Shown: positions 607 to 23,032 of the stretch, in pieces | How the letters are laid out: each line of letters begins with the position of its first letter | How positions within the stretch are numbered: position 1 is the first letter of the stretch | Assembly: GCF_001194135.2 (NCBI RefSeq) | Contig: NC_068992.1 | Span: 45,043,146 to 45,107,145 of the forward strand | Direction: 5' to 3' | DNA from: Octopus bimaculoides | Lineage: Eukaryota | Length of the DNA: 64,000 nucleotides | The notes under the pieces: model-generated | Told to the model about the DNA's origin: nothing | The model's input: only the letters and a program-made list of their open reading frames with translations | The model's database searches: none | Program-made: the position numbers and the translations under genes

Positions 607-738
607 AAAATGACATCACAGTTCTGACTTTACCGAGGAAACTAATTTTTAGTGACTGCATTCAACCAATAGCAGTTGCGCAACCTGGTGAAAGTTTTTA
701 TAGTAATTGCATCATTGCTGGTTGGGGTGAAACTAGAG
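607..738 (+). CDS. S1A serine protease gene 1, internal exon carrying catalytic Asp102 (ENDITVLTLPRKLIFSDCIQPIAVAQPGESFYSNCIIAGWGETR)
   Basis: Acceptor ttcttttcttcacag at 605-606 and donor gtgagt at 739; phase 1-1; NDI and CIIAGWG motifs; same 132-nt length and boundaries as the gene 2 exon at 21652-21783. Confidence 0.95.
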
Positions 739-2946: not shown

Positions 2947-3086
2947 CTGGAAAAGCAACAAAATACTTAAAAACTGCTGAAGTCCAACTGCTCGTATCGT
3001 CTGAATGCAGAATGTTCTTTCCAGATGTCACCAGTCAGCAAGTTTGTGGAGGATCAGGTTATTGGATGGGTCCAGAAGCATGCCAT
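2947..3086 (+). CDS. S1A serine protease gene 1, penultimate exon (AGKATKYLKTAEVQLLVSSECRMFFPDVTSQQVCGGSGYWMGPEACH)
   Basis: Acceptor ttgtttccag at 2945-2946 and donor gtaaat at 3087; phase 1-0; Cys168, Cys182 and Cys191 pattern; joins in frame to both neighbouring exons. Confidence 0.95.
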
Positions 3087-3476
3087 GTAAATATATCTAA
3101 CATTTTTTCTGTACTAAAATTACTACGTGGAACCAAAGGTTTTTTTTTCACCTGGTTACAAACGGGTGTATGGAGATTTTGCCTCCCAACCAGCCGAAAG
3201 GTGGATATAAGCGTAGAATTGAGCTTTAGGAAACAAACAAAAGAATATGATGATGTATATTTTGATGAATAAACACTTTTCGTACGTGCTTTGTTTGAAC
3301 TATTAATTAAAGCTTGAGATACAAAAGGCTTTTCAAACAACATTTGTAATATCAATAAACTTACATACAAACATAGTCACACACACACACAGACTCACAC
3401 GAGCACGCGTGAAACAAAATTATTTCTGAAAATGTTTCATTCGATTTTTACAAGCTGATTTTATTAAATCTTACAG

Positions 3477-3638
3477 GGAGACTCTGGTGGTCCTTTGATG
3501 TGTTTCAATGCAGTAACTGAAGAATTAACTATAGTAGGTATCACTTCTTATGGTGCAGCTAAATGTCAGAATGGAATGGGCGTTTACGAAAATGTGGCAC
3601 ATTTTGTTTCTTGGATTAACAGAATGAGAAATACTTAA
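3477..3638 (+). CDS. S1A serine protease gene 1, terminal exon with catalytic Ser195 (GDSGGPLMCFNAVTEELTIVGITSYGAAKCQNGMGVYENVAHFVSWINRMRNT*)
   Basis: Acceptor ttacag at 3475-3476; GDSGGP motif; TAA at 3636-3638; too short for the ORF track, translated by hand. Confidence 0.96.
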   Translation, partial: GDSGGPLMCFNAVTEELTIVGITSYGAAKCQNGMGVYENVAHFVSWINRMRNT

Positions 3639-3665
3639 TCACGATTTGATTATTGAATTGAAAAC

Positions 3666-3696
3666 AATAAAATGCAAGCATGTGATATTAAATAAA
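3666..3696 (+). terminator. Candidate polyadenylation signals of protease gene 1
   Basis: AATAAA at 3666-3671 and 3691-3696, 30-60 nt after the stop, followed by a T/GT-rich tract; AT-rich background lowers specificity. Confidence 0.5.
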
Positions 3697-3922
3697 TGTC
3701 AAATTATCTCAAGAATCACTATTGTTGCTATTATTATTGTTCTTGTTGTTTTTTTTCCAATATGGATGAGCAAAACTATGCTCGACGTGGTTCTACACGT
3801 GACTAAGCCGTCTTTTCCAGGGCATAAGGATATTTTATGCGTCAATTCCCTCCCATCTCGAATATCTTAATGTGTATGAATGTAACCACGTGTATATGCA
3901 TGTATGTATGTATGCATGTATG

Positions 3923-3988
<66 letters not shown>

Positions 3989-4188
3989 GATATATAGATG
4001 TAGATATAGATATAGATATATATTCAATTCAAAATGGCTGACGACTAGCATCGTGCTTGAAATTTAATAGTACCAACGAATTTGAATCAAACGGTTTTAA
4101 TCGATACATGTAACTCTCAATAAATCGGTTGAGTACCTTTCTTTCGTTTGTCTACTCACTTGTATATATATATGTGTGTGTATTATGA

Positions 4189-4494
4189 AGGGTACTCTGC
4201 TTACGATCGTGAGGTCGTGAGTTCAATTCCCGGCGACGCGTTGTGTCCTTGATCAAGACACTTTATTTCACGTTGCTGCAGTCCACTGAGCTGGCAAAAA
4301 TGAGTAGTACCTGTATTTCAAAGGGCCAGGTTTGTCACACTCTGCGTCACGCTGAATCTCCCTGAAAACAACGTTCAAGGCACACGTATCTGCGGAGTGG
4401 TCAGCCACTTGCATGTTAATTTAACGTGTAAGCTGTTCCGTTGATCGGATGGTATCAGCTGAGTCTCTAGTCGTTGTAACCGACGGTGTGCTCC
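4189..4494 (+). mobile_element. tRNA-derived SINE, family C (local name)
   Basis: B-box-like gagttcaattccc, core tgtgtccttgatcaagacactttatttcacgttgc; high similarity to the copy at 30510-30806. Confidence 0.88.
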
Positions 4495-4723
4495 TTTATA
4501 TATATATATATTAATAGTTATCGCCAAGCCAACATGGCAGTCCCAAACTTAGGACGAAAGCTGCCGTGAATTAGCTCCAAGAAGCCATCGCCTCTAGCTA
4601 GCTATGTGATACACGAAACCTGTGTCCTTTATAACCTTCGAACAAGGGAGGTCAGCAGTTTCCCCTTGCTGGTTTGGCATCTGCAGACTAGTTTCAGGGT
4701 GTTGCCCCTTGTCAATATACCTC

Positions 4724-4755
<32 letters not shown>

Positions 4756-5518
4756 TGTACGTGTGTATGCATGCATGCTTCTAGTTGTACACCACATATT
4801 AACCACTTAGTTGATAACATCTTGCAGCGTTGCTCATCTTTTAAAGAAAACCCAGTCTACATAATTTATTCTAAAAATTATTCTGGAAGTTGTTCAAAAA
4901 TTTTCAGCTTCTGACAAAACTACAAAAAATAATATACGCACATACATACACACACATTCACATACAGGCATACAATCTCACACACATATACATACGCACG
5001 TACACAAATATACGCACATGTATATATAAATATTATATGTCCCTAGGTACTTCTACAATAGACAATAGGAAAGTTACTGCTTAGAATAAATCTTTTACAT
5101 AATTATGTAATTATATAGTTAATTAGTAATTATGTAAATTGGTACATTATCTTGTAAATAACTTGTTTTACCACAACAAAAACGTTTTTGGGCGCAGTTT
5201 TATGAAGAAATTTATGCATGATTTCGATGTAAAGATTCTTATTGAATAAACTGAAAATTAACTGCAACTTTTAGAGTTATTTCATTGCAAATATATTGAA
5301 TTCATGTGGTTGTGTTTATTTTAAACATTTATAAACCGAGTGAGAGCGGTAACTGCTACTAGTTTCATGTATGTTATTCAGGGTTCCGTTGTCTGATGTT
5401 AAAATATTCTTTCCACCAAATATCCAACCCAATGTCGTTTTGTACATATCAACATTTACCTTCCCTACGATATTAATAGGGACGTATGTATGTGCATATA
5501 TGTGGATCACACATGCAC

Positions 5519-5720
5519 GTGTTTATGTCCCCGTAACTTAGAGGTTCGCCACAAATGACCGATAGAATAACTCCTAGGCTTACAAGGAATAAGTACTGGG
5601 GTCGATTTGCTCGACTAAATATGGTGCTCCAGCATGGCCGCGGTCAAATGACTGAAACAAGTAAAACACACCAGCATCGGTTATCAAGTGATGGTGGGGG
5701 AAAGACACACACCAATACAT
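5519..5720. mobile_element. Family B SINE with its 3' segment inverted
   Basis: 3' tail on + (5522-5666) directly abuts the middle segment on - (5667-5720). Confidence 0.8.
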
Positions 5721-5748
5721 ATATATATATATATATGTATATATACAA

Positions 5749-5785
<37 letters not shown>

Positions 5786-6984
5786 NNNNNNNNNNNNNNN
5801 NNNNNNNNNNNNNNNNNNNNNNNNNNNNNNNNNNNNNNNNNNNNNNNNNNNNNNNNNNNNNNNNNNNNNNNNNNNNNNNNNNNNNNNNNNNNNNNNNNNN
5901 NNNNNNNNNNNNNNNNNNNNNNNNNNNNNNNNNNNNNNNNNNNNNNNNNNNNNNNNNNNNNNNNNNNNNNNNNNNNNNNNNNNNNNNNNNNNNNNNNNNN
6001 NNNNNNNNNNNNNNNNNNNNNNNNNNNNNNNNNNNNNNNNNNNNNNNNNNNNNNNNNNNNNNNNNNNNNNNNNNNNNNNNNNNNNNNNNNNNNNNNNNNN
6101 NNNNNNNNNNNNNNNNNNNNNNNNNNNNNNNNNNNNNNNNNNNNNNNNNNNNNNNNNNNNNNNNNNNNNNNNNNNNNNNNNNNNNNNNNNNNNNNNNNNN
6201 NNNNNNNNNNNNNNNNNNNNNNNNNNNNNNNNNNNNNNNNNNNNNNNNNNNNNNNNNNNNNNNNNNNNNNNNNNNNNNNNNNNNNNNNNNNNNNNNNNNN
6301 NNNNNNNNNNNNNNNNNNNNNNNNNNNNNNNNNNNNNNNNNNNNNNNNNNNNNNNNNNNNNNNNNNNNNNNNNNNNNNNNNNNNNNNNNNNNNNNNNNNN
6401 NNNNNNNNNNNNNNNNNNNNNNNNNNNNNNNNNNNNNNNNNNNNNNNNNNNATATTTATACATAATAAATATTTGCGTGTGTATGTGAATGTATATATTT
6501 ATTCTCACTAGGACAAATGTAGAAGATTTTCAAAATGATAAATTATTTATTCCACTTGACACAGCCATATGTCTGACATATTTATTACATTACCCCCAAG
6601 AATAGGTGGAGATAGAATTAAGAAAACTTTCTATCCCCTCGGTACCCATTCCTATGAGAATTTTGCAGGACGATTTGAATAAATATTGAAATGCTTCACA
6701 CACAGTAATCTTCCACCTTAGCCGCTCCTTCGGTTTCGGTATACACAAATAGTAATATATATCGATTAACCTGAAGGCAAATTTTATAGGGAAATTATAA
6801 TCAATTGAATGAACTCCAGAATATTAATGACGCTCGTTATATCGATCTGTGAACCATAAAAGACACATAGGAACTTCTATACATTTGAACTTATATTACG
6901 AACAATGGTGCACCGAAATTTTTACGCAAATAGATCTAGTTCTTTTCAATTCTGTCTCCATCAGGTCTGTTGTTTTGTGTTCTA

Positions 6985-7019
<35 letters not shown>

Positions 7020-8767
7020 NNNNNNNNNNNNNNNNNNNNNNNNNNNNNNNNNNNNNNNNNNNNNNNNNNNNNNNNNNNNNNNNNNNNNNNNNNNNNNNNN
7101 NNNNNNNNNNNNNNNNNNNNNNNNNNNNNNNNNNNNNNNNNNNNNNNNNNNNNNNNNNNNNNNNNNNNNNNNNNNNNNNNNNNNNNNNNNNNNNNNNNNN
7201 NNNNNNNNNNNNNNNNNNNNNNNNNNNNNNNNNNNNNNNNNNNNNNNNNNNNNNNNNNNNNNNNNNNNNNNNNNNNNNNNNNNNNNNNNNNNNNNNNNNN
7301 NNNNNNNNNNNNNNNNNNNNNNNNNNNNNNNNNNNNNNNNNNNNNNNNNNNNNNNNNNNNNNNNNNNNNNNNNNNNNNNNNNNNNNNNNNNNNNNNNNNN
7401 NNTATATATATATATATATCTGTATATACATCAAGATAGATATGTGTAGCTTGTGTACATATTCACACACACACAACACAGACACACATATATATACATA
7501 TATATACTCACATTAGTGTGTTTGTATAAATCCGTATGGTGCTATATGTGTTTTTTGTGTGTGTATGTGTGTATGTTTGTGTAAATTACCATAATCCTAA
7601 CAGCAACAACGTCATTCTACTTTCCATTCCACATTCTAATCAATGCAATATTATTCACCCATTACTTGAATGAATAAATAGATAAATATTTAATAGAATG
7701 CATAATAAAAAATGGTGGACGGCAATTAGCTTGTCGAAAGTCTAGTAAGATATATTCTAAAGTCTAACCAAGATATATATATATATATATATTCTAAAAC
7801 TCACACTAACCTAGTAGATATCTTGTGGGTGGCAGAGCTGAATTATTTAATTCCGAAACCATTCTACTTTTGCACATCAAAAAGAGAGATAGTTTTGATA
7901 TTTATTGTGTAATTCGTTCAATATTAATTCATCAACCTCGTAGGAGTTTATATTTTGCCGAAGAATCCAGAGAAGAAAGCATAACAGAAGAAACATATCG
8001 AGCGTTGGTTTTCGTACTTGCTGGAAGAATTGAAATATTAATCCAGCAACTAATACGTTTTCCCTTTCATTTTATAATTTTTAAACAGTATGAAGTACTC
8101 ATATTAAAATCACTGGCCTTATTCCATACGATGGTCTACTTGTACTCAAGTGAGGAACTGTTATCCAGTTATAAACTTTATTGTGTAATAAGAGGGTTGG
8201 AGGGGTGCGTGAATCATGGGAAAGGGGAGTGGGTGGATCTTGATACATTGTTTAATATCAATGTAATCTACTGGTTCAACTCTCATCACAAGCTACTGCA
8301 AAGACCCTACATAGGGCTCAGTAAGTTGAATTATCTTGCTTTTCAATACTGGAATAGACTTAATTAATAAAATATGTATGTTTCTCATTACATTAAATAT
8401 TTTAGCTCCCATGTAAATTCCTGTTGTTCATGCGAACATTGGTCGAGGGAGTATACACCCAGTCATTATTACAAGTCTTCACGCCAGTCAGTGGTGGTTT
8501 TCCTCCCTTCAGATATCAAGAATTTGCTAAGCACTTCTGTGGCTGAGTTGTTTACGTCACTTCCCAATTTTTAAAAAAATATAATTTGGTCTAGTCTAGC
8601 TTGTTTTTCATAATAAGACCTGATATTTGAATTCAAGGTGTTCCTCTTCGCAAGGCATATCATTTTGGTTCATATAATGCATGCTATGTGTGTACTCATG
8701 CATATACACTATAGGAATATATGACACAATATCAAATCGTTCTAAAATATGTGTTTGCACAAGTATT

Positions 8768-8826
<59 letters not shown>

Positions 8827-8828
8827 AT

Positions 8829-8870
8829 TTGTTTACTTGTTTCGGTCTTTTGACTGCAACCATGCTGGAT
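8829..8870 (-). mobile_element. Family B SINE 3' tail running into a gap
   Basis: tttacttgtttcggtcttttgactgcaaccatgctgga is the reverse complement of the family B tail. Confidence 0.7.
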
Positions 8871-9789
8871 ATATATNNNNNNNNNNNNNNNNNNNNNNNN
8901 NNNNNNNNNNNNNNNNNNNNNNNNNNNNNNNNNNNNNNNNNNNNNNNNNNNNNNNNNNNNNNNNNNNNNNNNNNNNNNNNNNNNNNNNNNNNNNNNNNNN
9001 NNNNNNNNNNNNNNNNNNNNNNNNNNNNNNNNNNNNNNNNNNNNNNNNNNNNNNNNNNNNNNNNNNNNNNNNNNNNNNNNNNNNNNNNNNNNNNNNNNNN
9101 NNNNNNNNNNNNNNNNNNNNNNNNNNNNNNNNNNNNNNNNNNNNNNNNNNNNNNNNNNNNNNNNNNNNNNNNNNNNNNNNNNNNNNNNNNNNNNNNNNNN
9201 NNNNNNNNNNNNNNNNNNNNNNNNNNNNNNNNNNNNNNNNNNNNNNNNNNNNNNNNNNNNNNNNNNNNNNNNNNNNNNNNNNNNNNNNNNNNNNNNNNNN
9301 NNNNNNNNNNNNNNNNNNNNNNNNNNNNNNNNNNNNNNNNNNNNNNNNNNNNNNNNNNNNNNNNNNNNNNNNNNNNNNNNNNNNNNNNNNNNNNNNNNNN
9401 NNNNNNNNNNNNNNNNNNNNNNNNNNNNNNNNNNNNNNNNNNNNNNNNNNNNNNNNNNNNNNNNNNNNNNNNNNNNNNNNNNNNNNNNNNNNNNNNNNNN
9501 NNNNNNNNNNNNNNNNNNNNNNNNNNNNNNNNNNNNNNNNNNNNNNNNNNNNNNNNNNNNNNNNNNNNNNNNNNNNNNNNNNNNNNNNNNNNNNNNNNNN
9601 NNNNNNNNNNNNNNNNNNNNNNNNNNNNNNNNNNNNNNNNNNNNNNNNNNNNNNNNNNNNNNNNNNNNNNNNNNNNNNNNNNNNNNNNNNNNNNNNNNNN
9701 NNNNNNNNNNNNNNNNNNNNNNNNNNNNNNNNNNNNNNNNNNNNNNNNNNNNNNNNNNNNNNNNNNNNNNNNNNNNNNNNNNNNNNNNN

Positions 9790-9843
<54 letters not shown>

Positions 9844-10219
9844 CGTTATATATGTATGCATATATATGTGAATGTGTGTTTGTACGTATGAATATGTATG
9901 TTACTTGCAACAGGAAAATAAAAGCAATGCAAATACACGAACACACTCCCACACACAGGCCAAACAAATTCATTAACAAACTACAAAAGAACAAAGACAC
10001 GCACAAGCACAGACAAATATTCATTAATATTAAACTTGTATATTGTATGTTGACATAGTTAGAGTGAGAAGACTACCTCACACAGCTGAGACAGTATATG
10101 TGTGTATCTCTCATTTTATTTATGTATGTATATGTAAATGTACATCCGTCTAATCAATTGCCTATGTTACATCTAATCTGTATCGACACTGTCATTCATC
10201 AGGACCAGGCTGTAGTTTT

Positions 10220-10968
10220 TCCAATCTCTCCTTTGAATTTAAACGGTTCCAGTTCACAGTGAAACTAAGTTTCGCTATTTCAATAAACAAGTCTCAAGGA
10301 CAATCTCTCAAAGTTGTTGGACTTCACCTTGCTTCTCTCATGGTCAATTATATGTACGGTGTTCCCAATTTGGAAGTCCCCAAAATCTTTTCATTTATAC
10401 ACCAATTAAAGGGCACACTCAAACGATCTTATATCTAGAAGCTCCAGATAAATTAAAGTGTGATTGATTTCTGGATTTGTTTCAATGCATTTCTTTATAC
10501 TCATGTCATGTGACAGAATTTTTGTTAAATGTACTTATTAGCAGGAGTGGAGCGGCCCGCAGGACTGTTCTTATCAAATTTATGCATTTTCTGGTTCAAC
10601 GTGTTTCAAATAAGTACTGACAATTGAAGGTGATTGCGAAAACAAAGAACTACTCGGTTTTTTAACAATTTTAACCGTGTGAACATTAGACAAAACATGT
10701 TATTGACATTAATAGTTTGTACTTCAGCTAATTACTGTTGAGAAATGCATAATCCATGTTTCACTTTACTTACAGATATAAAAGGCATACTTAAATTTCA
10801 TTATGTTCAATAACCTGGGGAATGCCGGGTTATTAATGTATAAAGTTGATATCTCAGCTACTAGGAAGTAAGACCTGCGTAGTCTATGATTCATGTTAGA
10901 GATCTAAAAGGCATTTTTGAATTTCATTATTTCCTTTATCCCAGGCAATGCCAGGTATTTCTGCGAGT
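10220..10968 (+). mobile_element. Helitron 3' remnant (PIF1-like helicase C-terminus plus terminal hairpin)
   Basis: Frameshifted translation FEFKRFQFTVKLSFAISINKSQGQSLKVVGLHL / CFSHGQLYVRCSQFGSPQNLFIY matches Helitron helicase motifs V-VI (TINKSQGQSL, FSHGQLYVA); 3' hairpin ccaggcaatgccagg followed by a decayed CTAG-like end near 10965. Confidence 0.9.
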
Positions 10969-10969
10969 G

Positions 10970-11000
<31 letters not shown>

Positions 11001-12499
11001 AAAAAAAGAAAATAGACCAATTGACATATAGGTATCAGTTTATTTAAAGATATTCAAATCAATATTATATGAAATTCTTCTTTGCTCAAGGAGCTTCACA
11101 GTGGGACCAGCCGGTCGCAATTCTTCCTTCTCTATATCTTACGCTCTCTATTTCCATCAAGGACTATAAAATTATTTGTTGTTATACATCTACTTCTAAC
11201 ATGAAATATTGGAGAATTTAATTTCGTTTTTCACCCCGAATGAACATTGGTTTTTATACATCGTAATTTCTTTTGTCAAAAACTGTAATAGAATATCAAC
11301 TATAAATCATTCATTTGTTATCTAATGGATGTCTTTTAGTGGTGAAACTTAAATTTAATATTGTTAGAAGATTAAAAGAACATGACTCCATTCTATATGT
11401 ATATTCATTCAGCCGTTCAACGGTTTTCAGCATAAGCTAGATTTTTGTTTAATATCTGATTTCATTTTGTAGCATGTTTATTAACTTTACTTTGACAGCA
11501 ACGAAATTGATAATCAATTCCAGTCGGTGTCATATAAACCTAGAAATAACAACATGTCTCGTTGGACTGGGTTGAGACATTAGGTTTCTACTGCACAAGT
11601 TGTTGGTGTTCTTATACGTATTCAATGTCTACGTGTCTCTGTTTTTCAAGGCCCAATCTAACACTCTGCAAAAGCGAATTTCCAGATAAATGCATATTGA
11701 CGTAGATATATGTGTGTGCGTGTGTGTGTTTAGTGAATGGTATATGTGTGCATGTGTGCAGATTGTCGCTTGCCGTCAACCTTTAATGTTGTTTACTAAT
11801 TACATATTTCAAACATATGCAACACACGTGAACCGATAATTATTCTAATTTATTTTTACTGCATACATGATTGAATGAAATAAACATGGTAGAACAATGA
11901 ATATAGCGTGAAGATTTTAATCCAGCGGTTGTATGTTCGTATATATCTTGCCTCTATTTACTGTGTTTGCCAATACATTAGTATCCCTATTTGTAAGTCC
12001 AATTGTTCATTTTATTCACCCAGTATTCGCAATATCTCCCCTCTTCAAATAATCGTATTAACGGTAACATACAAAATGTTAAGAGATCTGAAATTTATTA
12101 GAAACTTCTTATCCGTTCTGGTATGAATTTAATCAATTCTATGTAGCAATATAAATCTAGTTTATCTGTATATGAAGTTAGGGAATATAACTAAACTGTG
12201 AACGTTGTTGGTTTTGTTTAGTCCCAGAACCAACCCAAATCAAAAAGTGCTTTGATCGAAACAGATTCAGAGTAATGAACAACTTGTATTTCTGAAACTT
12301 GACTATCCAAAGAATTCATTTATATGTTAAGACAGCAGGGTCTGAAACGAGAGGGTTTTGATATATCTAGCGGATCGATGGATACTGCAGAAGTTCTGAA
12401 CTCCCGCTGAGATAACGGAAAACTACAACTATTATTTAAGTGCACTGTTATATGCATCTGCATATATATGCATACAAACACACGTGCAAATATATAAAT

Positions 12500-12780
12500 A
12501 GTATTAATTGATAGTAGGAGGTGGATTTTGTATTAGACTTTTATTAGGTAGAACATATGTTTTGACCCAAAAGTCTGGGTCTCTTCAGGTACATTGATAA
12601 AGATGTCTCTCTAGATATTTTTTGTGTCGTCTGGCTTGTTGTTGTATACCCATCCAGTTCGAGAATGAATAAAAGTAAAAAATATTGTAGAAACGCAAAA
12701 GATTCAAATACGAACGTGGAAAACATTCGTCCCAGTTTAGGTAAAACGACGTAACCATCTTTCGCTGTCACTGTTCTTTT
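12500..12780 (-). mobile_element. Penelope-like terminal repeat fragment with a decayed type I hammerhead fold
   Basis: Minus strand CTGAAGA-GACCCA-gacttt-TGGGTC-AAAAC, palindrome ACATATGT, then AATAAA. This order is typical of Penelope pseudo-LTRs. Confidence 0.6.
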
Positions 12781-13315
12781 TAACTCAGGTGGAATAATCC
12801 GAGTTGTGGTTGTTAAGTTTACATTAGTTAAGTATGGTTACGATTGTAATTTGTGAATGTGTGTTTAGCTACATGCAGCCATCTGGGTAAGTGTGGAATA
12901 CGACTGTCACTACAAAAACCTGATGATTGTGCAACGCATGAAAATACTAGTTTATTTCGATATTGTGAAATTGTAATATTGTAATATTGTAAAATTGTAA
13001 AAATTGCAAATAATAAAACGTGAAAATCAGACTAAAATTGAATTTCTTTGCTTAATATATTGTTCTATACATAAGCATACAAACTCGTNNNNNNNNNNNN
13101 NNNNNNNNNNNNNNNNNNNNNNNNNNNNNNNNNNNNNNNNNNNNNNNNNNNNNNNNNNNNNNNNNNNNNNNNNNNNNNNNNNNNNNNNNNNNNNNNNNNN
13201 NNNNNNNNNNNNNNNNNNNNNNNNNNNNNNNNNNNNNNNNNNNNNNNNNNNNNNNNNNNNNNNNNNNNNNNNNNNNNNNNNNNNNNNNNNNNNNNNNNNN
13301 NNNNNNNNNNNNNNN

Positions 13316-13403
13316 AAGTGTCTTCTACTATAGCCTCGGGCCGACCAAAGCCTTGTGAGTGGATTTGGTAGACGGAAACTGAAAGAAGCCTGTCGTATAT
13401 ATG

Positions 13404-13434
<31 letters not shown>

Positions 13435-13636
13435 TTGTATGTCTGTGTTTGTCCCCCCCAATATCGCTTGACAACCGATGCTGGTGTGTTTATGCCCCCG
13501 TAACTTAGCGGTTCGGCAAAAGAGACCGATAGAATAAGTACTAGACTACCAAAGAATAAGTCCTGGGGTCGATTTGCTCGACTAAAGGCGGTGCTCCAGC
13601 ATGGCCACAGTCAAAAGACTGAAACAAGTAAAAGAG
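13316..13636 (+). mobile_element. Family B SINE, consensus-like; head lost in the gap
   Basis: Core, internal TA/TG microsatellite and tail all intact with CpGs retained. Confidence 0.92.
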
Positions 13637-14094
13637 TATATATATATATATTCACACAAACACAGACACTGACATTTAGGGAATGGAATCACAAATACAA
13701 ACATCTGAAAAATTATGTAAACTTGTAATATTTTGGGAATATCTGAGAAAGGGAGACAAATGCCCGATAATCGCAAGAATCCGTGCATTACACGATGTCG
13801 AGGGCGACTGATTTCGGAAATAGTTTGAGATAAATTTAAGTAATTAATATAAAAATTAAAGTGCGCAATAAAGGAACTCACGGAAAGTTTAGAAGTAATC
13901 TAAATAAAATAAGATGCATTCAAGGTGAGAAAGTGATGAAAACAATATGTGAACATTTTCTGATAAATCTTTGACAAGAACTGTCAATAAATACAAGTAC
14001 AGTTTATTAGTGTGCATGAATACACTCGAATACACACAGAAATGTTATTCATATAATAAATAAATCTATATGTGTATACATATATGCCCGTATG

Positions 14095-14129
<35 letters not shown>

Positions 14130-14793
14130 CAAAGATAGATATAAATATATGTGTGTATGTGTGTCTGTGTATGTATAGGCATATATAAACAAACCACCCA
14201 AGACATCAATAAATGAAACTTCTACCAACATATCTCAAACAGCACTAAAATTGAAAACTAGTATAGACACGAAAAAAAACACGTCAAATCTTTTCTTTTT
14301 ATGCACTGACAATATTTATACATCTTACACTTATCGTATATTGGTTTTTTTCCTCGGATTCTTCTGAGAAAATATCTGTTGAACTAGGTTATTATACTTT
14401 AGGGTATGGTTAATGTATGGTTTAGTCATATTTATAGCTTTTTTTATATCTGCCTTTATTTCTTATTTCTTCGTATTTATGTGTGTTTATGGTGATTTAG
14501 TATGTACGTATATGATAAGTGTATTTCTGTCTGTGTTTGGATATGAAATATATTAGACATACACACACACATTCTCATGCACGCTCGCTCACACACACAC
14601 ACGCGCGCGCGCGCGCGTATACAGATATGTATGTGAGTGTGCGTGTGCATGGGTGTGTGTGTCTGTGTCTGTGCCTGTGTAGTTATAAGCTTTTACATTT
14701 GTACGTATATATAAATATCTATATCCATGTATACATGTATGAATGAACATTAAACCCGCAGATGTATGCGTTTATAGATTTGGGATATGTATG

Positions 14794-14867
<74 letters not shown>

Positions 14868-15126
14868 CATATATATGTATGTATATATATATTATATATA
14901 CATATGTGTGCATGCATATACATATGCGTGTGCTTTATATATACATATACAAATATACATATATATATATATGTACATATATATGTATGGGTCCGTGTGT
15001 GTACATGTGTGCGTATCAATTCTTTCGTTTGAAAATTCTGATGTAATCTGAGAATGCATCAGTAAAACACTGCCGAAACAGCTGTTGTAAATTGTGGACC
15101 CCACTTGTGTTCTTCTTTTATACGTG

Positions 15127-15190
<64 letters not shown>

Positions 15191-15887
15191 ATATATATAT
15201 ATATCTGCGTGTGTATGTGTTATGATTAGAAAGAAAAGAAACCAAGGAAAAGAGAGAGGGTGGGACCAGATACTCTCTTACTTACACGATATGATGCAAA
15301 CATTAAATAAATGTTATCGCCTAGAAACACAGCGGAAATTTTACTATGATGGAGACACCTTAAAACCAGGTGCGTTTGCATACGCACCTTTAATCATGTA
15401 GCCTTATTAATGTATAATTACGTCTATTTACATTATTTAATTTAACATTTCGATATATCATCGAGTTCTTTCTTCTTTCACACGAAGCAAATAAGGCGCG
15501 AAGTGCTCCCCATAAAATTAACACGTTTCGTTACTGTTGCAGCCAGTACATCTCTTAAGTCATATCCTAGTTCTGCTGTGGGACTCACCATATGCCCAAA
15601 GTGTGCTGCTCGTTAATGTAGTTCATCTAAATATTGATTTTGCATAAAGATTACTCGCTAATCCAATAGAGATGTTTTAATGGCTGTCAAATGGGTTTGG
15701 ATCATCATTGTACATCCTCTCCATTAACTAATAGTTTTATTCTATATTTGTTCATGACAATGTCAATTACTTTGTTTTAAACCTAGCAAACCTAAAAACA
15801 TCTGCTAGTGCAGAAGCACTAATATATGTATGTATATATGCCTATGTATACATATACAGATATATAAATATGCATATGTGTGTGAGT

Positions 15888-15957
<70 letters not shown>

Positions 15958-15980
15958 GCATGCATACTTACATGAATATA

Positions 15981-16013
15981 TATATAACCTTAATCTGACT
16001 TACATCACCATTT
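15981..16013 (+). promoter_or_regulatory. Candidate TATA box and initiator of protease gene 2
   Basis: TATATAA at 15981-15987 and CCATTT at 16008-16013 (A at 16010, 29 nt from the TATA start), 23 nt before the ATG; lies next to a (TA)n microsatellite, so chance is possible. Confidence 0.4.
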
Positions 16014-16032
16014 GAAGCATTACGAGCTAGCC

Positions 16033-16087
16033 ATGTTTACTCCGTTTCTCTTGATTACCGTATTAATTGCAGGAAATGTTGTCGAAG
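16033..16087 (+). CDS. S1A serine protease gene 2, exon 1 (signal peptide MFTPFLLITVLIAGNVVE)
   Basis: gccATG context, hydrophobic core LLITVLIA, phase-1 donor G|gtaaga at 16088 that fits the phase of exon 2. Confidence 0.82.
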
Positions 16088-17298
16088 GTAAGAGAGATAA
16101 CTGATTCAAGTCATAATTAGTTTAATTACTTTCATGAATAAATTCGTTTCAAAATTAATGAAACGTTGAAGCTGTATACCATATAATTTCGTTATTTTCA
16201 AAATGTATTCTTAAAACCGCAATAAAGAGGATCACTCATCAAAGGTCTTAGTTTACCGGGCTTCTTTTATATAATTTTTAAAACTAAATTAATATTTTGC
16301 TCGTTTATTACGACAGGTAGGCAAAAGTTGTTTATACAGACAAATGTTCTTGGTATACAAGTATTGCTTCAAGCAAACAAGTATTAACTTAGACAAGTGT
16401 TGTGCTGTTTTTGATAGTTTTTTTTTTTGTTGTCGTTACTTTTGTCTGACATGTGTTGTTTCAGATAGACAAATTTTGCTTTAAATAGAGAAGTATTCTT
16501 TAATTAAATAGATGTTGTTTTATCGCTAATCTCTGACTACATAACCTTCGTAGTTTTGTGCCAATAAAACTGCCGAGCAACGTCTACACTTTTGGTGCGT
16601 CGGGCGTTATATTTTTCCTGATTGCCTCTTCTAATCTGATGGGTACTTACCCCTCTATTCTATTTTCTGTTAGATTTATTCTTCTGATTCTGTGTTAACC
16701 TATATCTGCTTTGTTCAACTAGATCTCTCATGAGAGAACCACCACTTCCATTCGAGATCACATCCGTCAATTCCCGCCTGTTTGCTGTAGGATTTCCATG
16801 TCGTGAACAATATAGTAATGGAATACTTGTCTTTGTGACTTATCTTGGTTGATCAGCTGTATCAAAGACATGCATTTTGTACAACTAGCAATCTGCAACT
16901 GAATACCTCCAACGTTATCGCTAATCGTTGGCCTGGGGAAAAACCATACTGTCATATAACTTGGTTGCTTCTCTGTTTTGTTCAAGTCCAAATTGGCGCC
17001 TTTAAGAATTCCAGTTTGTAGCTGTTAATGTCTAATAGCTAGATAATTGGAATTGTCTATCACTGTTGTGTTACTGATTAATGAAGGGGTATTCTTTTAC
17101 AGCAGAAACCTTACAGTCACTGCTTATTATTTTCTTCTTGGCTTTATATGTTTATATACTCTACTTGTTCAAAAACACAAAATTTCCCCAAGGCTCCACA
17201 TCGTGGTTTACTTCTGATTAATCATATTTCCTGCTAGATGTTTTGATGTCTCACTTACGTCTGTTTACCTTCAAACATATATATCTGCTTATACATAC

Positions 17299-17346
<48 letters not shown>

Positions 17347-17589
17347 NNNNNNNNNNNNNNNNNNNNNNNNNNNNNNNNNNNNNNNNNNNNNNNNNNNNNN
17401 NNNNNNNNNNNNNNNNNNNNNNNNNNNNNNNNNNNNNNNNNNNNNNNNNNNNNNNNNNNNNNNNNNNNNNNNNNNNNNNNNNNNNNNNNNNNNNNNNNNN
17501 NNNNNNNNNNNNNNNNNNNNNNNNNNNNNNNNNNNNNNNNNNNNNNNNNNNNNNNNNNNNNNNNNNNNNNNNNNNNNNNNNNNNNNNNN

Positions 17590-17634
<45 letters not shown>

Positions 17635-17728
17635 CTACATCTATCTATATATTTATGTATATATATGTATATCGGCAACATGGTCAGTTATCTCTATTAT
17701 TGTAATGTGTTACTCCTTCTCTTTATAG

Positions 17729-17888
17729 TGTTTTCCTCACACCATCGACACATTATGGGAGGCATTAAAGCTGATCAATGTGAATTTCCTTGGATTGTCT
17801 CTTTATTGTTGATTAAAGGAGGAAGATACTTTGTATGTTCCGGAACTCTTATAAACGATCTCCAAATTCTTACAGCTGCTCATTGTGC
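17729..17888 (+). CDS. S1A serine protease gene 2, exon 2 (VFSSHHRH-IMGGIKADQCEFPWIVSLLLIKGGRYFVCSGTLINDLQILTAAHCA) with His57
   Basis: Acceptor ccttctctttatag at 17727-17728, donor gtaagt at 17889; IMGG mature N-terminus, FPW, CSG and TAAHC motifs; phase 1-2. Confidence 0.96.
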
Positions 17889-18204
17889 GTAAGTAAATGT
17901 TTGCATATGACGCCAATATTGTTTACATGTTCTTAAGGAAGGAATTGGTAGTCAACAGATGATAGTTAACATTTGTTTTACTATAACCAATGTTCATCTC
18001 CCTCTTTCGATAAATTTCTTTTCCGTATTTTGAGATCGGTCAAATAGGCACCAGTGATATACTTGAGTTGATACCACTGGCTTTACTATTGATCTGAAAC
18101 GTGCTCTTGTGACTTGTGAAAAAAGAAGTCCATATTACCTTTCTTCACGGACAAACGTTGATTGGACAATTACAATAAAATAACAAGCAATTGTGTTGGT
18201 AATA

Positions 18205-18419
18205 AAATATTGGTTTCAAATTTTGGCACAAAGTCAGCAATTTCGGGGTCGTGGGTAAGTCGATTACGTCGATCTCAATGCTCAACTAATTGATACTTAT
18301 TTTATCGACACCGAAAGGATGAAAGTCAAAATCGATCTTGGCGGAATTTGAACTCAGAACATAAAGACAGTACCTCAAGCAGTTTGCCCGGAAAGCTATC
18401 GATTCTGCCAGCTCACCGC
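18205..18419 (-). mobile_element. tRNA-derived SINE, family A (local name), in intron 2 of protease gene 2
   Basis: Reverse complement ggtgagctggcagaatcg...gagttcaaattccgcc..gtcgatttt..tttcatcctttcgg; homologous to 24238-24450. Confidence 0.85.
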
Positions 18420-18432
18420 ATTAAAGATATAC

Positions 18433-18806
18433 TACAGGGTGATTCAAAACTCGCCATACATAGGAACAATTTATCTTTTTATAAGAAACAGTTTATAAGA
18501 GAAGATTTTTTTTTATTTAACGGGTTCTATATGGTTACCTTTCTTTTGAATACACATTGCAATACGTTTACCCAACTCATTGTGAACTCGTAATAGAAAT
18601 CTGATGATACGTGTGCAAATGAGTTGGTGATGCGTTCCTTCAAATGATTTATGTCTTTTATCTTTCCACTATACTCTATGCCTTTCAAATTCCCCCAAAG
18701 ATAGAAATCAAGAGGGATCACATCAGGGAATCTAGGGGATCTTATAAACTGTTTCTTAAAAAAAAAATTTTTTTCCTATGTATGGAGACTTTTGAATCGC
18801 CCTGTA
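18433..18806 (-). mobile_element. Non-autonomous Tc1/mariner-superfamily element, about 66-bp imperfect TIRs, TA target duplication
   Basis: TA|cagggtgattcaaaac... and ...tttgaatcgccctg|TA; internal minus frame RSPRFPDVIPLDFYLWGNLKGIEY...LKERI matches the SPDLxPxDFxLWGxLK transposase C-terminal motif. Confidence 0.9.
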
Positions 18807-18835
18807 TAATAATTTCATAAATTACTACCTATGAA

Positions 18836-18986
18836 ATTCTTTTCTACTATAGACACAAAGCCTGAAATTTGCGGGGTGGGCAGCTAGTTAATTACTTCGA
18901 TCCCAGTGTTTCACTGATATTTGTTTTATCGACCCTAAAGGATGAAAAGCAAAGTCGATCTCGGCGGAATTTGAACCTAGAATGTA
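18836..18986 (-). mobile_element. 5'-truncated family A SINE
   Basis: tttctactatagacacaaagcctgaaattt...aaagtcgatctcggcggaatttgaac matches family A. Confidence 0.82.
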
Positions 18987-19103
18987 AACTCCGCCTATCA
19001 AATTAAGAGGTTTTATGGTACAATAAAATTTTTAATAGGAAGAATTTGTGATTTATCGTGAATGTTATATTTTGCAATTTAAACGGAATCATACATATTA
19101 CAG

Positions 19104-19228
19104 GAAAGATGTGGACAAAGTCATTGTTTCTGCAGGAAGTAGTAACCGACGGTCCATGACAACATTTACTTATGTTTTCAAATCCGGTATCCATTCTCAC
19201 CCCGATTATGTTGGTCCCCCGGCTTTTG
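19104..19228 (+). CDS. S1A serine protease gene 2, exon 3 (KDVDKVIVSAGSSNRRSMTTFTYVFKSGIHSHPDYVGPPAF)
   Basis: Acceptor tattacag at 19102-19103, donor gtgagt at 19229; phase 2-1; V-x-A-G and HPDY motifs. Confidence 0.93.
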
Positions 19229-19538
19229 GTGAGTAAATCTAACAGTTCGTTCTATTTTTAAAAAAAAGAAACATATCAAAATATTACCCAGTAGAATTGG
19301 ACTTGAAAGTAAAATGATAGAATTTACAATCTCCATATAGAATACAGAAGTGTTAGTCAGTAGGACACATGATGCAATCTTACACACACACACACACACA
19401 CACACATGCACACACACGCACACACACACACACACATACATACACACTCATACACGTGTGCTTGCATCCAAACATACATACATGTATACATGCATACATA
19501 CATACACACACATACATACATACATACATACATACATA

Positions 19539-19938
19539 CAGGCGTGGCTATATAGTAAGTTTCCTTCCCTACCACATGGTTTCAGGTTCAGTCCCACTGC
19601 GTAGCATCTTGGGTAAGTGTTTTCTACTATAGCTTCGGACCGAACAAGGCCTTATGAGTAGATTTGGTAGACGGAAACTGAAAAAAGGTTGTCGCCTATG
19701 TGTGTATGTGTGTGGGTGTGTGCCTATATGTGTACGTCTTTGCGTTTGTACTTGTCCCCCACTATTGCTTGACAACTAGTGTTGGTCTGTTTATCCCCGT
19801 AACCTAGCGGTTCGGCAACTAATACCAGGTTTAAAATAACAAGTATACGGGTAGATTCGTTCAATTAACTACTCTTCAAGGTGGTACCCCAGTATGGTCG
19901 CAGTCTAATGACTGAAACATGCAAAAGATAAAAGATAA
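19539..19938 (+). mobile_element. Family B SINE, full length and diverged, in intron 3 of gene 2
   Basis: Head ggcgtggctatatagtaag...ggttcagtcccactgcg, core and tail gactgaaacatgcaaaaga. Confidence 0.88.
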
Positions 19939-21474
19939 ATACATGTATGCTTGTTTGTGTGTGCGTACGTATTTCAAAATTGGGATTTAAAATCCATGTA
20001 GATTTGAGCAGTAATCATTTTGTACTTAGATTTAGCAGGAAATATTGACAAAAACCTCGAAAATCTAAAAAAGGAGATTTTGAAACAAATACTAGTGTAA
20101 GTTGCTTTCGATTAATCATCTAAATGAACTTATTTACACCGAAGTAAACAAGTAATTAGAGTGGATAAAAGAATATTTGTTCAATAGAAATATTTTGTAT
20201 TAAAATGATTTTTGTTTTATAAAGTTCAACATAACTCATCGTTAAATACGGATTAGATCAATAATGTTTATTCTGAAATTCTGAAAGTATAACAGACACT
20301 GACGTGGTATAAACATTGTTTTACGTTAACTCTCATATATAACTGACAATGTCACATGTTGTGTGGTGAAAAACTTACTTGATATTTCCTTTAATCTTGC
20401 TGAATCATAATAATATTTATGATTCTATTTTATTTAGAAACTAATTAAGTAGCAATGTGTTAAATCAAATCAACGGTTTCATTGTTAGAAATGAATAAAA
20501 AAAAGGAACACTCAGATTCTCACTTTGTTACGAAAGCCAACAATTTCAAAAATATTTCAAGAACTAAAATAAATTCTGGCCAATGACGAAGTAATTCAAT
20601 GGAGATATTTTGATATCATTCTTCATGGGAGACTAGAACCGTTATTAAAACATAATTAAGTGTAATATTGTCTAAATTCATAATGATAAAAGTTGTTTAA
20701 TTCATTTATTGGTACGTACCAAACTGAGATCTCCATCGAATATAACGATGTTGAAGTCATCTAAGTAGAATTTACCCATGACCAGTCGACAATATAATAG
20801 GACATTTTATGTTTAGTATTGAAACAGTTTGACAATGAAACCGTTTCTTAAACAGTCATTATTTTTCAAAAAATCTATTATTTTCAGTTAAGTTACCCGA
20901 ACTTATTTAAAGTAAAGAGTGTTTATTATGGAAAAAAAAACTAGGGTCGGTAACAATATAATAACCACTGGCCTCTACTGGTTTTCTCACGCGCTACATA
21001 CATTACTATTTGCAGTTTTTCAGAAATATTAAAGTAACTAAGCATATAAAATATTAAACAATTGAAGTGTAAAAGTCATCTGATGGAAATTGTTTCAAAC
21101 AGTGAAAAAAAGTTTTTTAAATATTTCCATTCCGAAGCGTACTTCTTACATATCGTCAGTTTAGTAACGATGTATCATACCTTCTTCATATTCCGAAATG
21201 TAAAACAAAAGAGGGCCATTAATTACACCACATTCACAAATCCAAAATGCATAACAAGTGTTATTGTTAAAAATGTTATTGTATCAACAAGCAAATAGTC
21301 AAGTTTATTTATTTATTTTTTTTTTTTATATGGAAGTATAACTTCCATATGAAAATTAAAGCATTATTAAACTATATTACCTTAATTTTGGAGGATGGAA
21401 AGAATAAAAACTTCCAAAACACAAGCAGATTTAGATTTTTCTAATTATTCCATTCTTTTGTCTTGTATAGTACA

Positions 21475-21523
<49 letters not shown>

Positions 21524-21651
21524 TCACGCACGCGCGCACACTGAGACACATATACGCATGCATGTTTACATACGCCGTCATCACTACAATGACATCCTAA
21601 AAGCCGTTATGTGTATATGCCATTCTACCTCCTCTTCTTTTTTCGTTACAG

Positions 21652-21783
21652 AGAACGATATAGCGATTCTAAACCTACCCTCTTCAATCAGTGACGGTCA
21701 CTGTATTAAGCCTTTAGGCATTCCCCAGAAGGGAGAAAAAATATCAAACAACTGTGTCATTGCAGGCTGGGGAGTCAGTTCCG
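21652..21783 (+). CDS. S1A serine protease gene 2, exon 4 with Asp102 (ENDIAILNLPSSISDGHCIKPLGIPQKGEKISNNCVIAGWGVSS)
   Basis: Long pyrimidine tract with AG at 21650-21651, donor gtaagt at 21784; phase 1-1; NDIAIL and AGWG motifs. Confidence 0.96.
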
Positions 21784-21905
21784 GTAAGTATGATATTGCT
21801 TTGTAGCACACGACTAAATCGAATGACAAATGTTACATGAATACAATGACCTAACAGTATTAAGCCGCACACAAAGATATCGACTGTACATGAATGTATG
21901 TGCAT

Positions 21906-22125
21906 ATTCTTTTTCTCTTTTTACTTGTTTCAGTCATTTGACTACCGCCATGCTGGAGCACCGACTTAAAGGTTTTGATTCGAAGAAATCGGCTCCAGGA
22001 CTTATTCTTCGTAAGCCTAGTACTTAATTTATCGCTCTTTTCGCCGAACCGCTAGCTTACAGGGACCTAAAGGCATCAGCATCGGTTGTCAAACGATGGC
22101 GAGGGACAAATACAGACACATACAT
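21906..22125 (-). mobile_element. Family B SINE 3' half, in intron 4 of gene 2
   Basis: tttacttgtttcagtcatttgactaccgccatgctggagcaccg...gccgaaccgctag...catcggttgtcaaacgatgg. Confidence 0.88.
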
Positions 22126-22132
22126 ACAAATA

Positions 22133-22174
<42 letters not shown>

Positions 22175-22175
<1 letters not shown>

Positions 22176-22330
22176 TTCAAATTTATGGAAGAAAACAAAA
22201 GATGAAGACAGGTGTAGGAACAACAAGCAGGTGTATTAGTTTGACGCTCGGGAAAATGGAAAAGTCTGTTTTACGTTTCGAACCTACGCAGTTCGACAGA
22301 CTGGATTAAGAAGGGAAAATGGAGAGAGAG
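22175..22330 (-). mobile_element. Possible second Penelope-like terminal fragment
   Basis: 7-bp stem AGTCTGT/ACAGACT encloses a GAAC/GTTC hairpin plus GAAACGTA on the minus strand; the hammerhead CUGANGA core is not intact. Confidence 0.35.
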
Positions 22331-22889
22331 TCGAAAAAAGCGAAGAGAGAGAAAATGTGCAGAGTTCAACGGTTCAACATGGCGAGATGACTGAAAAAAA
22401 AGAAGCTGAATGAAAAGGGAGATAATAATAATGATAATAACGGTAACAGTGACCCCCAACGAACTAAGGTACGCAAGCGCGCGTGTGTGTATGTGAGACT
22501 ATTGTGTGTGAGTGTGTATGTGTGAATGGATGCGAGTGAGTACGTATGTGCGGGCGAATGTGTGTGTGCGTGTGAATGTGCGTATGGACTCGTTTATATG
22601 TATGAGTATGCGTATGAACGTGTGTATATGTGTGGGGCTAACGTGTATGTGTGTGCATGTGTGGCTGTATCAAGCAATAAATACTTCTTCCATAATATTT
22701 TAATCGCAGTTTGAAAAGCGTTTTACTATGAGTACCTAGGTGTCTGATTAACTGGCAGGTAACATTTTCAGCTAATAAAAAAAATTAAAATAATCCATAT
22801 GTTTAAAAATCTCTCTCCTGTTTGTATATATGTGTGTGCACGCTGTTAAATAAATTGCTGAATATTGTAATACTAATTAATGTTTTCAG

Positions 22890-23032
22890 GAAATAGTTAT
22901 GGTACAAATCAGCTGCAGACTGCCAAAGTAAAATCATTCTCACAATCACAATGCAAACAACATTTTTCGCGTATCACTAAGCAACAGTTGTGCGCTGGGT
23001 CTGGGGTTCGAAATGGAGCTGAATCTTGCCGG
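22890..23032 (+). CDS. S1A serine protease gene 2, exon 5 (GNSYGTNQLQTAKVKSFSQSQCKQHFSRITKQQLCAGSGVRNGAESCR)
   Basis: Acceptor gttttcag at 22888-22889, donor gtaagt at 23033; phase 1-0; LQTA and QLCAG motifs. Confidence 0.96.

Follow-up and report, generated by a model that had tools for sequence, protein, structure and literature searches.

A stretch of 64,000 nucleotides of Octopus bimaculoides DNA (contig NC_068992.1, positions 45,043,146 to 45,107,145 of the forward strand, assembly GCF_001194135.2; hereafter the window) carries two serine protease genes, referred to here as gene 1 and gene 2, both of which encode glutamate at residue 189 (chymotrypsinogen numbering). Residue 189 is the textbook determinant of trypsin versus chymotrypsin specificity. 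A six-frame scan of the window detected two GDSGG motifs, at 3477 and 24748 of the + strand. Gene 1 is XP_014772668.1 (274 residues; chymotrypsin-1 in RefSeq), the last three exons of which lie inside the window and exons 1-3 upstream. Gene 2 is XP_014772669.1 (transmembrane protease serine 12 of O. bimaculoides in RefSeq), with all six exons inside the window; its span is identical to GCA_001194135.2 CM046612.1 at ~45.06 Mb. The spliced product of gene 2 has 259 residues and is identical to XP_014772669.1 over every residue, and the gene 1 fragment translated from the window exons is contained exactly in XP_014772668.1. All splice junctions in both gene models are GT-AG, and the reading frames are intact.

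All features of the two genes lie on the + strand. Exon 4 of 6 of gene 1 (607..738) starts in phase 1 and encodes (E)NDITVL...IAGWGETR between AG and GT boundaries; it contains the Asp102 codon GAC (612-614), and its length of 132 nt is common to all paralogues. Exon 5 (2947..3086) ends with GGT CCA GAA GCA TGC CAT (GPEACH) followed by GTAAAT. The last exon, exon 6 (3477..3638), starts with GGA GAC TCT, encodes GDSGGP...RMRNT with Ser195 (TCT, 3483-3485) and TSYG (3543-3554), and closes with a stop codon at 3636-3638. In gene 2, exon 1 (16033..16087) provides the start codon, the signal peptide MFTPFLLITVLIAGNVVE and a phase-1 donor, and exon 2 (17729..17888) encodes the propeptide FSSHHRH, IMGG and TAAHC with His57 (CAT, 17881-17883). 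Exon 3 (19104..19228) encodes KDVDKVIVSAG...GPPAF, and exon 4 (21652..21783) encodes ENDIAIL...IAGWGVSS with Asp102 (GAT, 21657-21659). Exon 5 (22890..23032) ends with GGA GCT GAA TCT TGC CGG (GAESCR) followed by GTAAGT, and the last exon, exon 6 (24748..24912), encodes GDSGGP...GYDK and the stop codon, with Ser195 (TCT, 24754-24756) and TSYG (24814-24825). A GT donor directly follows both GPEACH (last base 3086) and GAESCR (last base 23032), and a phase-0 intron separates residues 192 and 193 of the pocket motif in both genes.

In gene 1, Glu189 (3075-3077), Ala190 (3078-3080), Cys191 (3081-3083) and His192 (3084-3086) are encoded in exon 5, and the pocket wall residues Gly216 (3552-3554), Met225 (3576-3578) and Gly226 (GGC, 3579-3581) in exon 6. 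The corresponding residues of gene 2 are Glu189 (23021-23023), Ser190 (23024-23026), Cys191 (23027-23029) and Arg192 (23030-23032) in exon 5, and Gly216 (24823-24825), Phe225 (24847-24849) and Thr226 (ACA, 24850-24852) in exon 6. A preliminary description of this DNA had claimed Glu189 (GAA) in both genes, His192, Gly216 and Gly226 in gene 1, and Arg192, Gly216 and Thr226 in gene 2; each of these residues was present where it had been placed. The span that was first noted, 3072-23032, runs from Glu189 to Glu189, and residues 193-228 of gene 2 (24748-24912) fall outside it. The claimed identity of ~44% between the two proteins agrees with the 45% obtained over 233 residues. The assumed numbering also held in alignment: HMMER alignment to solved structures placed Glu on Asp189 of neuropsin (NGADTCQGDSGGP) and of factor XIa, and Thr of gene 2 on Gly226, and an alignment of 98 sequences gave the same residue numbering as the solved structures. 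Among these 98 sequences, position 189 was Asp in 67, Gly in 13, Ser in 12 and Glu in five. Position 190 (Ala in gene 1, Ser in gene 2) was Ser in 48, Ala in 26 and Thr in 19. Gln predominated at position 192 (65 sequences; His in gene 1, Arg in gene 2), Gly at 216 (96 sequences; Gly in both genes), Pro at 225 (83 sequences; Met in gene 1, Phe in gene 2) and Gly at 226 (70 sequences; Gly in gene 1, Thr in gene 2).

Pfam Trypsin (PF00089) matched gene 2 with an E-value of 1.7e-46 (159.3 bits) and the gene 1 fragment with an E-value of 1.3e-25 (91 bits), at a cut-off of 20.6. The catalytic triad of gene 2 (His57, Asp102 and Ser195 in TAAHC, DIA and GDSGGP), together with Asp194 and the Ile16 N-terminus, is encoded entirely in the window. 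For gene 1, Asp102, Asp194 and Ser195 are in the window, and His57 and Ile16 are in the upstream exons, as seen in the protein sequence P0270. An AlphaFold2 model of gene 2 had a mean predicted local distance difference test score (pLDDT) of 96 and a predicted template modelling score (pTM) of 0.92, and Foldseek gave TM-scores of 0.82-0.87 between this model and chymotrypsin, crayfish trypsin, granzyme H and factor XIa. Both genes thus encode S1A serine peptidases of the chymotrypsin fold with its two beta-barrels. Gene 2 starts with a hydrophobic signal of the cleavable type (MFTPFLLITVLIAG), followed by a propeptide of ~7-12 residues and the protease domain from residue 27. Each protein of the array described below is predicted to be a secreted zymogen composed of a signal peptide, a short His-rich propeptide and one catalytic domain. 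No membrane anchor or stem region was found in the 259 residues of gene 2, in which Pfam detected the Trypsin domain only, and its identity as TMPRSS12 or another type II transmembrane protease was rejected because an N-terminal anchor and stem are lacking. The RefSeq namesakes of the array members (TMPRSS12, chymotrypsin-1, granzyme B and chymotrypsinogen A) have the S1A domain in common with them at ~30-37% identity. The RefSeq names of the four members are best-hit labels, and none of the members is orthologous to its vertebrate namesake.

Four genes, A-B-C-D, form a head-to-tail array in which gene 1 is the third (C) and gene 2 the fourth (D). Genes A and B lie upstream of the window in O. 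bimaculoides CM046612.1 (1-418 and 10001-21441 of the extracted locus L002). Gene A encodes 348 residues, the last ~100 of them forming an acidic extension, and in its orthologues GDSGTP takes the place of GDSGGP. Gene B (P0003; chymotrypsinogen A in RefSeq) encodes 270 residues, and O. bimaculoides was the sole species in which it was found. A, C and D also have orthologues in Argonauta hians and in one or both of O. sinensis and O. vulgaris. The six-exon layout is common to paralogues B, C and D, those with a mapped structure, and the O. vulgaris orthologue of gene 2 has the same six exons, with lengths of 55, 160, 125, 132, 143 and 165. In a neighbor-joining tree, A, C and D each held Octopus and Argonauta sequences, B was sister to C, and the array clade stood apart from its outgroups, which do not have Glu189. 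Since A, C and D each contain both Octopus and Argonauta, the duplications that formed the array predate the Octopus-Argonauta split. Clade B was not found in the 10 kb upstream of O. vulgaris gene 1, a flank too short for the larger intergenic distances of that species.

The first homologue search, a word-index search with gene 2, missed the Octopus cluster of clade C and was rerun with clade A and clade C queries. In a profile search of 1.84 billion representatives, the top list consisted mostly of multi-domain polyproteases, and the sole high-scoring single-domain relatives were octopod sequences (P0001, P0129, P0209 and P0252). None of the homologue searches turned up members from squid, cuttlefish, nautilus or other molluscs, the coverage of decapodiform proteomes in the databases being uncertain. 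The array is therefore provisionally regarded as restricted to octopods.

The preliminary description had suggested that Glu189 defines a subfamily, and this was borne out by the array. Glu189 was found in 12/12 recovered clade sequences from O. bimaculoides, O. sinensis, O. vulgaris and Argonauta hians, a count to which gene A of O. bimaculoides, seen only from its last exon, does not contribute. The codon was GAA in 6/6 coding sequences read at the DNA level, including that of Argonauta D. Elsewhere Glu189 proved rare, occurring in 2/478 (0.4%) of the S1-domain motifs of all other fetched proteins. Both cases were in a single Blattella germanica protein (PSN49652.1; P0258), domains 1 and 2 of which have Glu189 (GKEACNGDSGGP) with Ile226 and the third domain Asp189. 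It is possible that a longer acid at 189 co-varies with a filled position 226, a suggestion drawn from two lineages only. Relatives outside octopods were at most 38% identical to the array members and had Asp, Ser or Gly at 189; in the closest outgroups the residue was Ser (Argonauta P0006), Thr (Argonauta P0252) or Asp (Patella).

The four lineages differ in the rest of the pocket. Clade A has Ala190, Gln or His192, Val225 and Ala226, and reads GDSGTP, not GDSGGP. Clade B has Ala190, His192, Met225 and Ala226. Clade C has Ala190, His192 and Met225, with Gly226 in three Octopus species and Val226 in Argonauta, and clade D has Ser190, Arg192, Phe or Tyr225 and Thr226 in all four species. Thr226 was also encoded in the D orthologue of a further octopus (last exon, NTGFTVYSNV, in Logan contigs SRR11869390, SRR11869384 and SRR11869391); these three contigs are genomic, with an intron and an AG acceptor upstream of the last exon, and yield no sign of transcription. 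The contrast at 226 that had been claimed between gene 1 and gene 2 thus stands for gene 2, as Thr is fixed across lineage D, but not as a fixed property of gene 1, as lineage C varies between Gly (Octopus) and Val (Argonauta). Residue 225 is Phe in gene 2, Tyr in its Argonauta orthologue and Met in gene 1. Work by Dang and Di Cera in 1996 is said to have identified Tyr or Phe at 225 as the mark of Na+-activated enzymes among the vertebrate clotting proteases; a residue of the Na+-site type could matter for a secreted enzyme of a marine animal.

The ratio of nonsynonymous to synonymous substitution rates (dN/dS) between O. bimaculoides and O. vulgaris was lower in gene 2 (0.23) than in gene 1 (0.59), in which many of the changes affect the propeptide. 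The array genes are under purifying selection. Glu189 arose once, in the ancestor of the array, and none of the four paralogue lineages has lost it from a time before Octopus and Argonauta diverged. This unbroken retention suggests selection rather than neutrality, because Asp is only one third-position change away and the change of Asp189 to Glu (D189E) costs trypsin ~1000-fold in kcat/Km. We are highly confident of this genomic and evolutionary description of the array.

The predicted activation bond of gene 2 joins His15 (CAC, 17749-17751) to Ile16 (ATT, 17752-17754) in exon 2, the propeptide and Ile16 occupying 17731-17754. In clade D, the site reads HHRH then IMGG, with His at P1 (the residue preceding the cleaved bond), and is identical in Octopus (O. 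sinensis and O. vulgaris) and Argonauta. P1 is also His in clade B (HLHH then IIDG), Ser or Asn in clade C (HKH[S/N] then IIGG; Ser in gene 1 itself) and Lys in clade A (HHRK then IWNG). His-rich propeptides occur in all four clades (gene 2, P0270, P0003, P0277 and P0004). In 93 homologues outside the clade, on the other hand, the residue before Ile16 was Arg or Lys in 73 and His in one. The trypsin-type zymogen arrangement, in which cleavage follows Arg15 or Lys15, was thus found in neither gene 1 (Ser) nor gene 2 (His). Because the residue before Ile16 is Ser or Asn in gene 1 and its orthologues and His in gene 2, we infer that both are activated by something other than a trypsin-like enzyme. 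Removal of the propeptide by a dipeptidyl peptidase, in the style of granzymes, was set aside on general knowledge, as an N-terminal Arg blocks cathepsin C.

We lean slightly toward the explanation that gene 1 and gene 2 are intact paralogues of an octopod array in which the Glu189 carboxylate would bind a positively charged P1 residue, resulting in cleavage of the trypsin type; for the part that concerns specificity, the chances appear about even. Both enzymes would be catalytically competent, the longer acidic side chain would make the pocket shallower, and the wall residues would tune each paralogue. With Ala190, Gly216 and Gly226, gene 1 would have an open pocket and would be expected to be an Arg/Lys enzyme, as is human KLK15. 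With Ser190, Thr226 and Phe225, gene 2 would have a narrowed pocket that favors Lys or shorter basic side chains and disfavors Arg. Compared with the trypsin class, both genes have an acidic residue at 189, but it is Glu; gene 1 has both Gly216 and Gly226, and gene 2 has Gly216 but Thr226. Craik et al. in 1985 and Sichler et al. in 2002 reportedly found that residues 190, 216 and 226 tune the preference for Arg versus Lys, Ala190 favoring Arg, Ser190 admitting Lys, and a side chain at 226 narrowing the pocket. From these rules for 190 and 226, Arg/Lys cleavage is predicted for gene 1 and cleavage after Lys or a shorter cation for gene 2. Ornithine is one methylene shorter than Lys.

Three precedents bear on this prediction. 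Human KLK15 has a natural Glu189, and although a shift toward Lys has been suggested, ~1400 cleavages in MEROPS favor Arg at P1 (PMC12786316, PMC3014083). In trypsin, D189E kept the specificity and lowered kcat/Km ~1000-fold (Evnin, Vasquez and Craik 1990, cited in PMC11597625). The D187E mutant of Bombyx cocoonase still cuts after Arg and Lys, gains cleavage after ornithine and does not cleave after His, which was observed in the Asp-to-Ser mutant D187S only (PMC11597625). Considering these enzymes, it is plausible that the octopod proteases prefer Lys or a shorter basic side chain to Arg. The preference for His that had also been proposed has no mutational support.

Several points weigh against tryptic cleavage. 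Glu189 in a standard pocket makes a poor trypsin, as the ~1000-fold loss in D189E indicates (PMC11597625), and the octopod pocket may have been remodeled to serve another purpose. Thr226 of gene 2 is an elastase-type residue that occludes the pocket. In addition, the 220-loop lacks one residue relative to chymotrypsin, and Pro is absent from position 225. The nearest outgroups carry Ser or Thr at 189, so that the array may descend from a non-tryptic ancestor. Furthermore, because the activation sites are non-basic, members that were strictly specific for Arg/Lys could not activate one another, clade A with Lys15 excepted.

One alternative, which we consider unlikely, is that the enzymes have a non-standard P1 preference. 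According to this alternative, the Glu189 pocket, narrowed at 226, would select a short cationic or polar side chain such as that of His, and clades D and B would activate themselves or each other at His15-Ile16 of their His-rich propeptides. Since His is protonated only at acidic pH, such cleavage could act as a pH switch. The HHRH/IMGG bond in the gene 2 orthologues of four species and HLHH/IIDG in clade B are consistent with it, as are the single His15 among the 93 homologues outside the clade and the abundance of His in the propeptides of all four clades. Glu189 together with a residue other than Gly at 226 would also shorten the pocket, and the gain of ornithine cleavage by cocoonase D187E points the same way (PMC11597625). 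However, the same mutant does not cleave after His, which required Ser at that position (PMC11597625), and KLK15 prefers Arg in spite of its Glu189 (PMC12786316). The activation sites follow no uniform rule either, P1 being Ser or Asn in gene 1 and its orthologues and Lys in clade A. Autoactivation of D or B would require cutting after His, and this is the sole evidence that favors His; the hint is weak because the activator may be an unrelated protease and because the ordinary Asp189 enzyme KLK5 already binds SPINK9, an inhibitor with His at P1, so that Glu189 is not required (PMC3014083). The stronger proposal, that the octopod Glu189 family narrowed at 226 would have a true specificity for His (or a short cation) at P1 and that gene 2 and clade B would activate themselves in a pH-dependent manner, appears improbable. 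So far as our searches showed, a natural class of His-directed serine endopeptidases is not known for this fold.

In a further alternative, which we regard as rather improbable, Glu189 would be tied up by its neighbors and would not serve as a substrate-binding charge, leaving a pocket for small or neutral residues like that of chymotrypsin or elastase, especially in gene 2. In that case, RefSeq would be nearly right in calling two of the proteins chymotrypsin-1 and chymotrypsinogen A. In elastase the pocket is filled by Thr226 together with Val216, and gene 2 has Thr226. Ser189 or Thr189 in the nearest outgroups and the non-basic activation sites also agree with a neutral pocket, as does the top Foldseek match to chymotrypsin, though this is nearly tied with trypsins. 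On the other hand, the strict conservation of Glu (GAA) in 12/12 sequences of four paralogue lineages argues that the carboxylate matters, and a buried unpaired carboxylate would be costly unless used. Gly216 is also present throughout, and gene 1 has Gly226, which leaves the pocket of gene 1 open.

There is little to recommend the view that Glu189 is nothing special, that is, a conservative Asp-to-Glu change frozen by common descent in ordinary trypsins that would be indifferent to the change back to Asp (E189D). All occurrences do stem from one ancestral event in the tree, and ordinary tryptic cleavage can go together with Glu189, as in KLK15 (PMC12786316). However, D189E is far from neutral in trypsin, with kcat/Km down ~1000-fold (PMC11597625), and Asp, one third-position step away, has not come back in any lineage since before the Octopus-Argonauta split. 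Glu189 is also accompanied by a residue other than Pro at 225, by a short 220-loop and, in three of four clades, by a residue other than Gly at 226.

Finally, the reading that the genes are artefacts, either exons mis-joined across the five N gaps inside the span 3072-23032 or pseudogenes, has virtually no standing: it is refuted by the gap, splice and orthologue tests, since the exons for residues 189-228 are free of gaps, the flanks of the single intronic gap are collinear with a gapless assembly, all junctions are GT-AG with open frames, length and exon structure agree with those of orthologues from three other species, and dN/dS is below 1. Four of these gaps are intergenic (5786-6451, 7020-7402, 8877-9789 and 13089-13315), between the stop of gene 1 (3638) and the start of gene 2 (16033). 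The fifth (17347-17589) is non-coding and lies in intron 1 of gene 2, between exon 1 (16033-16087) and exon 2 (17729-17888). No coding exon is touched by a gap, nor, in either gene, is the intron that separates the two exons encoding residues 189-228. The gaps were checked against the gapless O. vulgaris assembly, as the newer chromosome assembly of O. bimaculoides has the same N runs. The flanks of the intron 1 gap were collinear with the O. vulgaris locus L005 (window 15128-17322 with 9101-11299, and window 17590-18811 with 11309-12546). Only ~10 bp of a (TG)n tract separates the two blocks in O. vulgaris, with no hidden exon. The intergenic blocks were also collinear, as far as the O. vulgaris loci extend.

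Among known systems, KLK15 (MEROPS S01.081) resembles the array most directly, being a natural and active S1A enzyme with Glu189 and an intact triad, unique in this respect among the 15 human KLKs (PMC12786316, PMC3014083); for the array, activity is predicted. KLK15 is activated after a basic residue and prefers Arg, whereas the octopod activation sites (clade A excepted) are non-basic. The octopod enzymes also differ from it by Thr, Ala or Val at 226 (three of four clades), a residue other than Pro at 225 and a shorter 220-loop. The best PDB match of gene 2 was neuropsin/KLK8 (E = 2e-29), the nearest KLK of solved structure, which is only about a third identical. The KLKs are vertebrate genes. 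Because the closest non-octopod relatives of the array are at most 38% identical with Asp, Ser or Gly at 189, and because the clade splits from outgroups that do not have Glu189, common descent with KLK15 was rejected, and the Glu189 of octopods and that of KLK15 are convergent, with independent origins.

The mutants trypsin D189E and cocoonase D187E carry the same change at the pocket floor, and the gain of ornithine fits a shallower acidic pocket (PMC11597625). The engineered enzymes are crippled, with ~1000-fold lower kcat/Km, whereas the octopod genes are kept under purifying selection; this difference implies that the octopod pocket is co-adapted to Glu. Gene 2 has Thr226 in common with pancreatic elastase and other S1A enzymes in which the pocket is occluded (Thr226/Val216), but it retains Gly216 and its residue 189 is acidic instead of Ser, so that its pocket is only half closed and is charged. 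The venom serine proteases of the cephalopod posterior salivary gland also comprise lineage-specific tandem expansions of secreted single-domain S1 enzymes in octopods (Whitelaw et al. 2020, PMC7656900). Unlike those expansions, the Glu189 array is small (four genes), conserved and not expanded in a species-specific manner.

The array genes have already been annotated automatically in RefSeq. No publication was found on the accessions of the two genes or of their O. sinensis orthologues, nor on the RefSeq name combined with "octopus", and a 2026 preprint on cephalopod venom contained nothing on the array genes. A natural Glu189 is already known from KLK15, where it arose independently. The novelty lies in a conserved array, restricted to one lineage, in which Glu189 occurs together with a residue other than Pro at 225, a short 220-loop, a variable residue 226 and His-rich propeptides whose activation sites are non-basic. 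Glu189 is seldom met in natural enzymes (0.4% of the S1 domains in our sample), KLK15 being the one studied case, and the retention of Glu189 in four paralogues shows how the rest of the pocket can co-adapt to a longer acid. If the paralogues differ in their preference for Arg, Lys or short cations, they would form a natural series for specificity engineering, and if they differ as predicted, they might yield proteomics-grade proteases with new cleavage rules. If their kinetics are ordinary tryptic, the array would be one more lineage-specific S1 subfamily. It offers a clean and testable case for protease specificity, yet one that is unsurprising in a family as plastic as S1A. For cephalopod biology, a small conserved protease array is defined, and the RefSeq names (TMPRSS12, granzyme B and chymotrypsin) are misleading.

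The window as a whole is AT-rich and microsatellite-rich and contains 14 N gaps. A tblastn search with gene 2 found no third protease gene in it, and ten long open reading frames elsewhere in the window, eight of them at 25000-64000, had no Pfam match. The region 25000-64000 is rich in microsatellites of the (TG)n/(CA)n type, which translate as THTH/CVCV runs, and several N gaps of the window abut microsatellite tracts (e.g. 17590-17632). Isoform X1 of the O. sinensis gene 2 orthologue (P0274, 262 residues) has three extra residues, GKR, at the junction of exons 1 and 2; the bases after the exon 1 donor of gene 2 (GGTAAGAGA; window 16085-16100) would give the same GKR if read through. Intron 4 of gene 2 (21784-22889) is 1.1 kb long in O. 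bimaculoides versus 19.6 kb in the gapless O. vulgaris assembly (L005 18671-38246). Gene 2 extends over 8.9 kb in O. bimaculoides and 30.9 kb in O. vulgaris, and gene 1 over 9.2 and 23.3 kb, respectively. This difference in size reflects either a true expansion of introns or a collapse of repeats in the gapped O. bimaculoides assembly.

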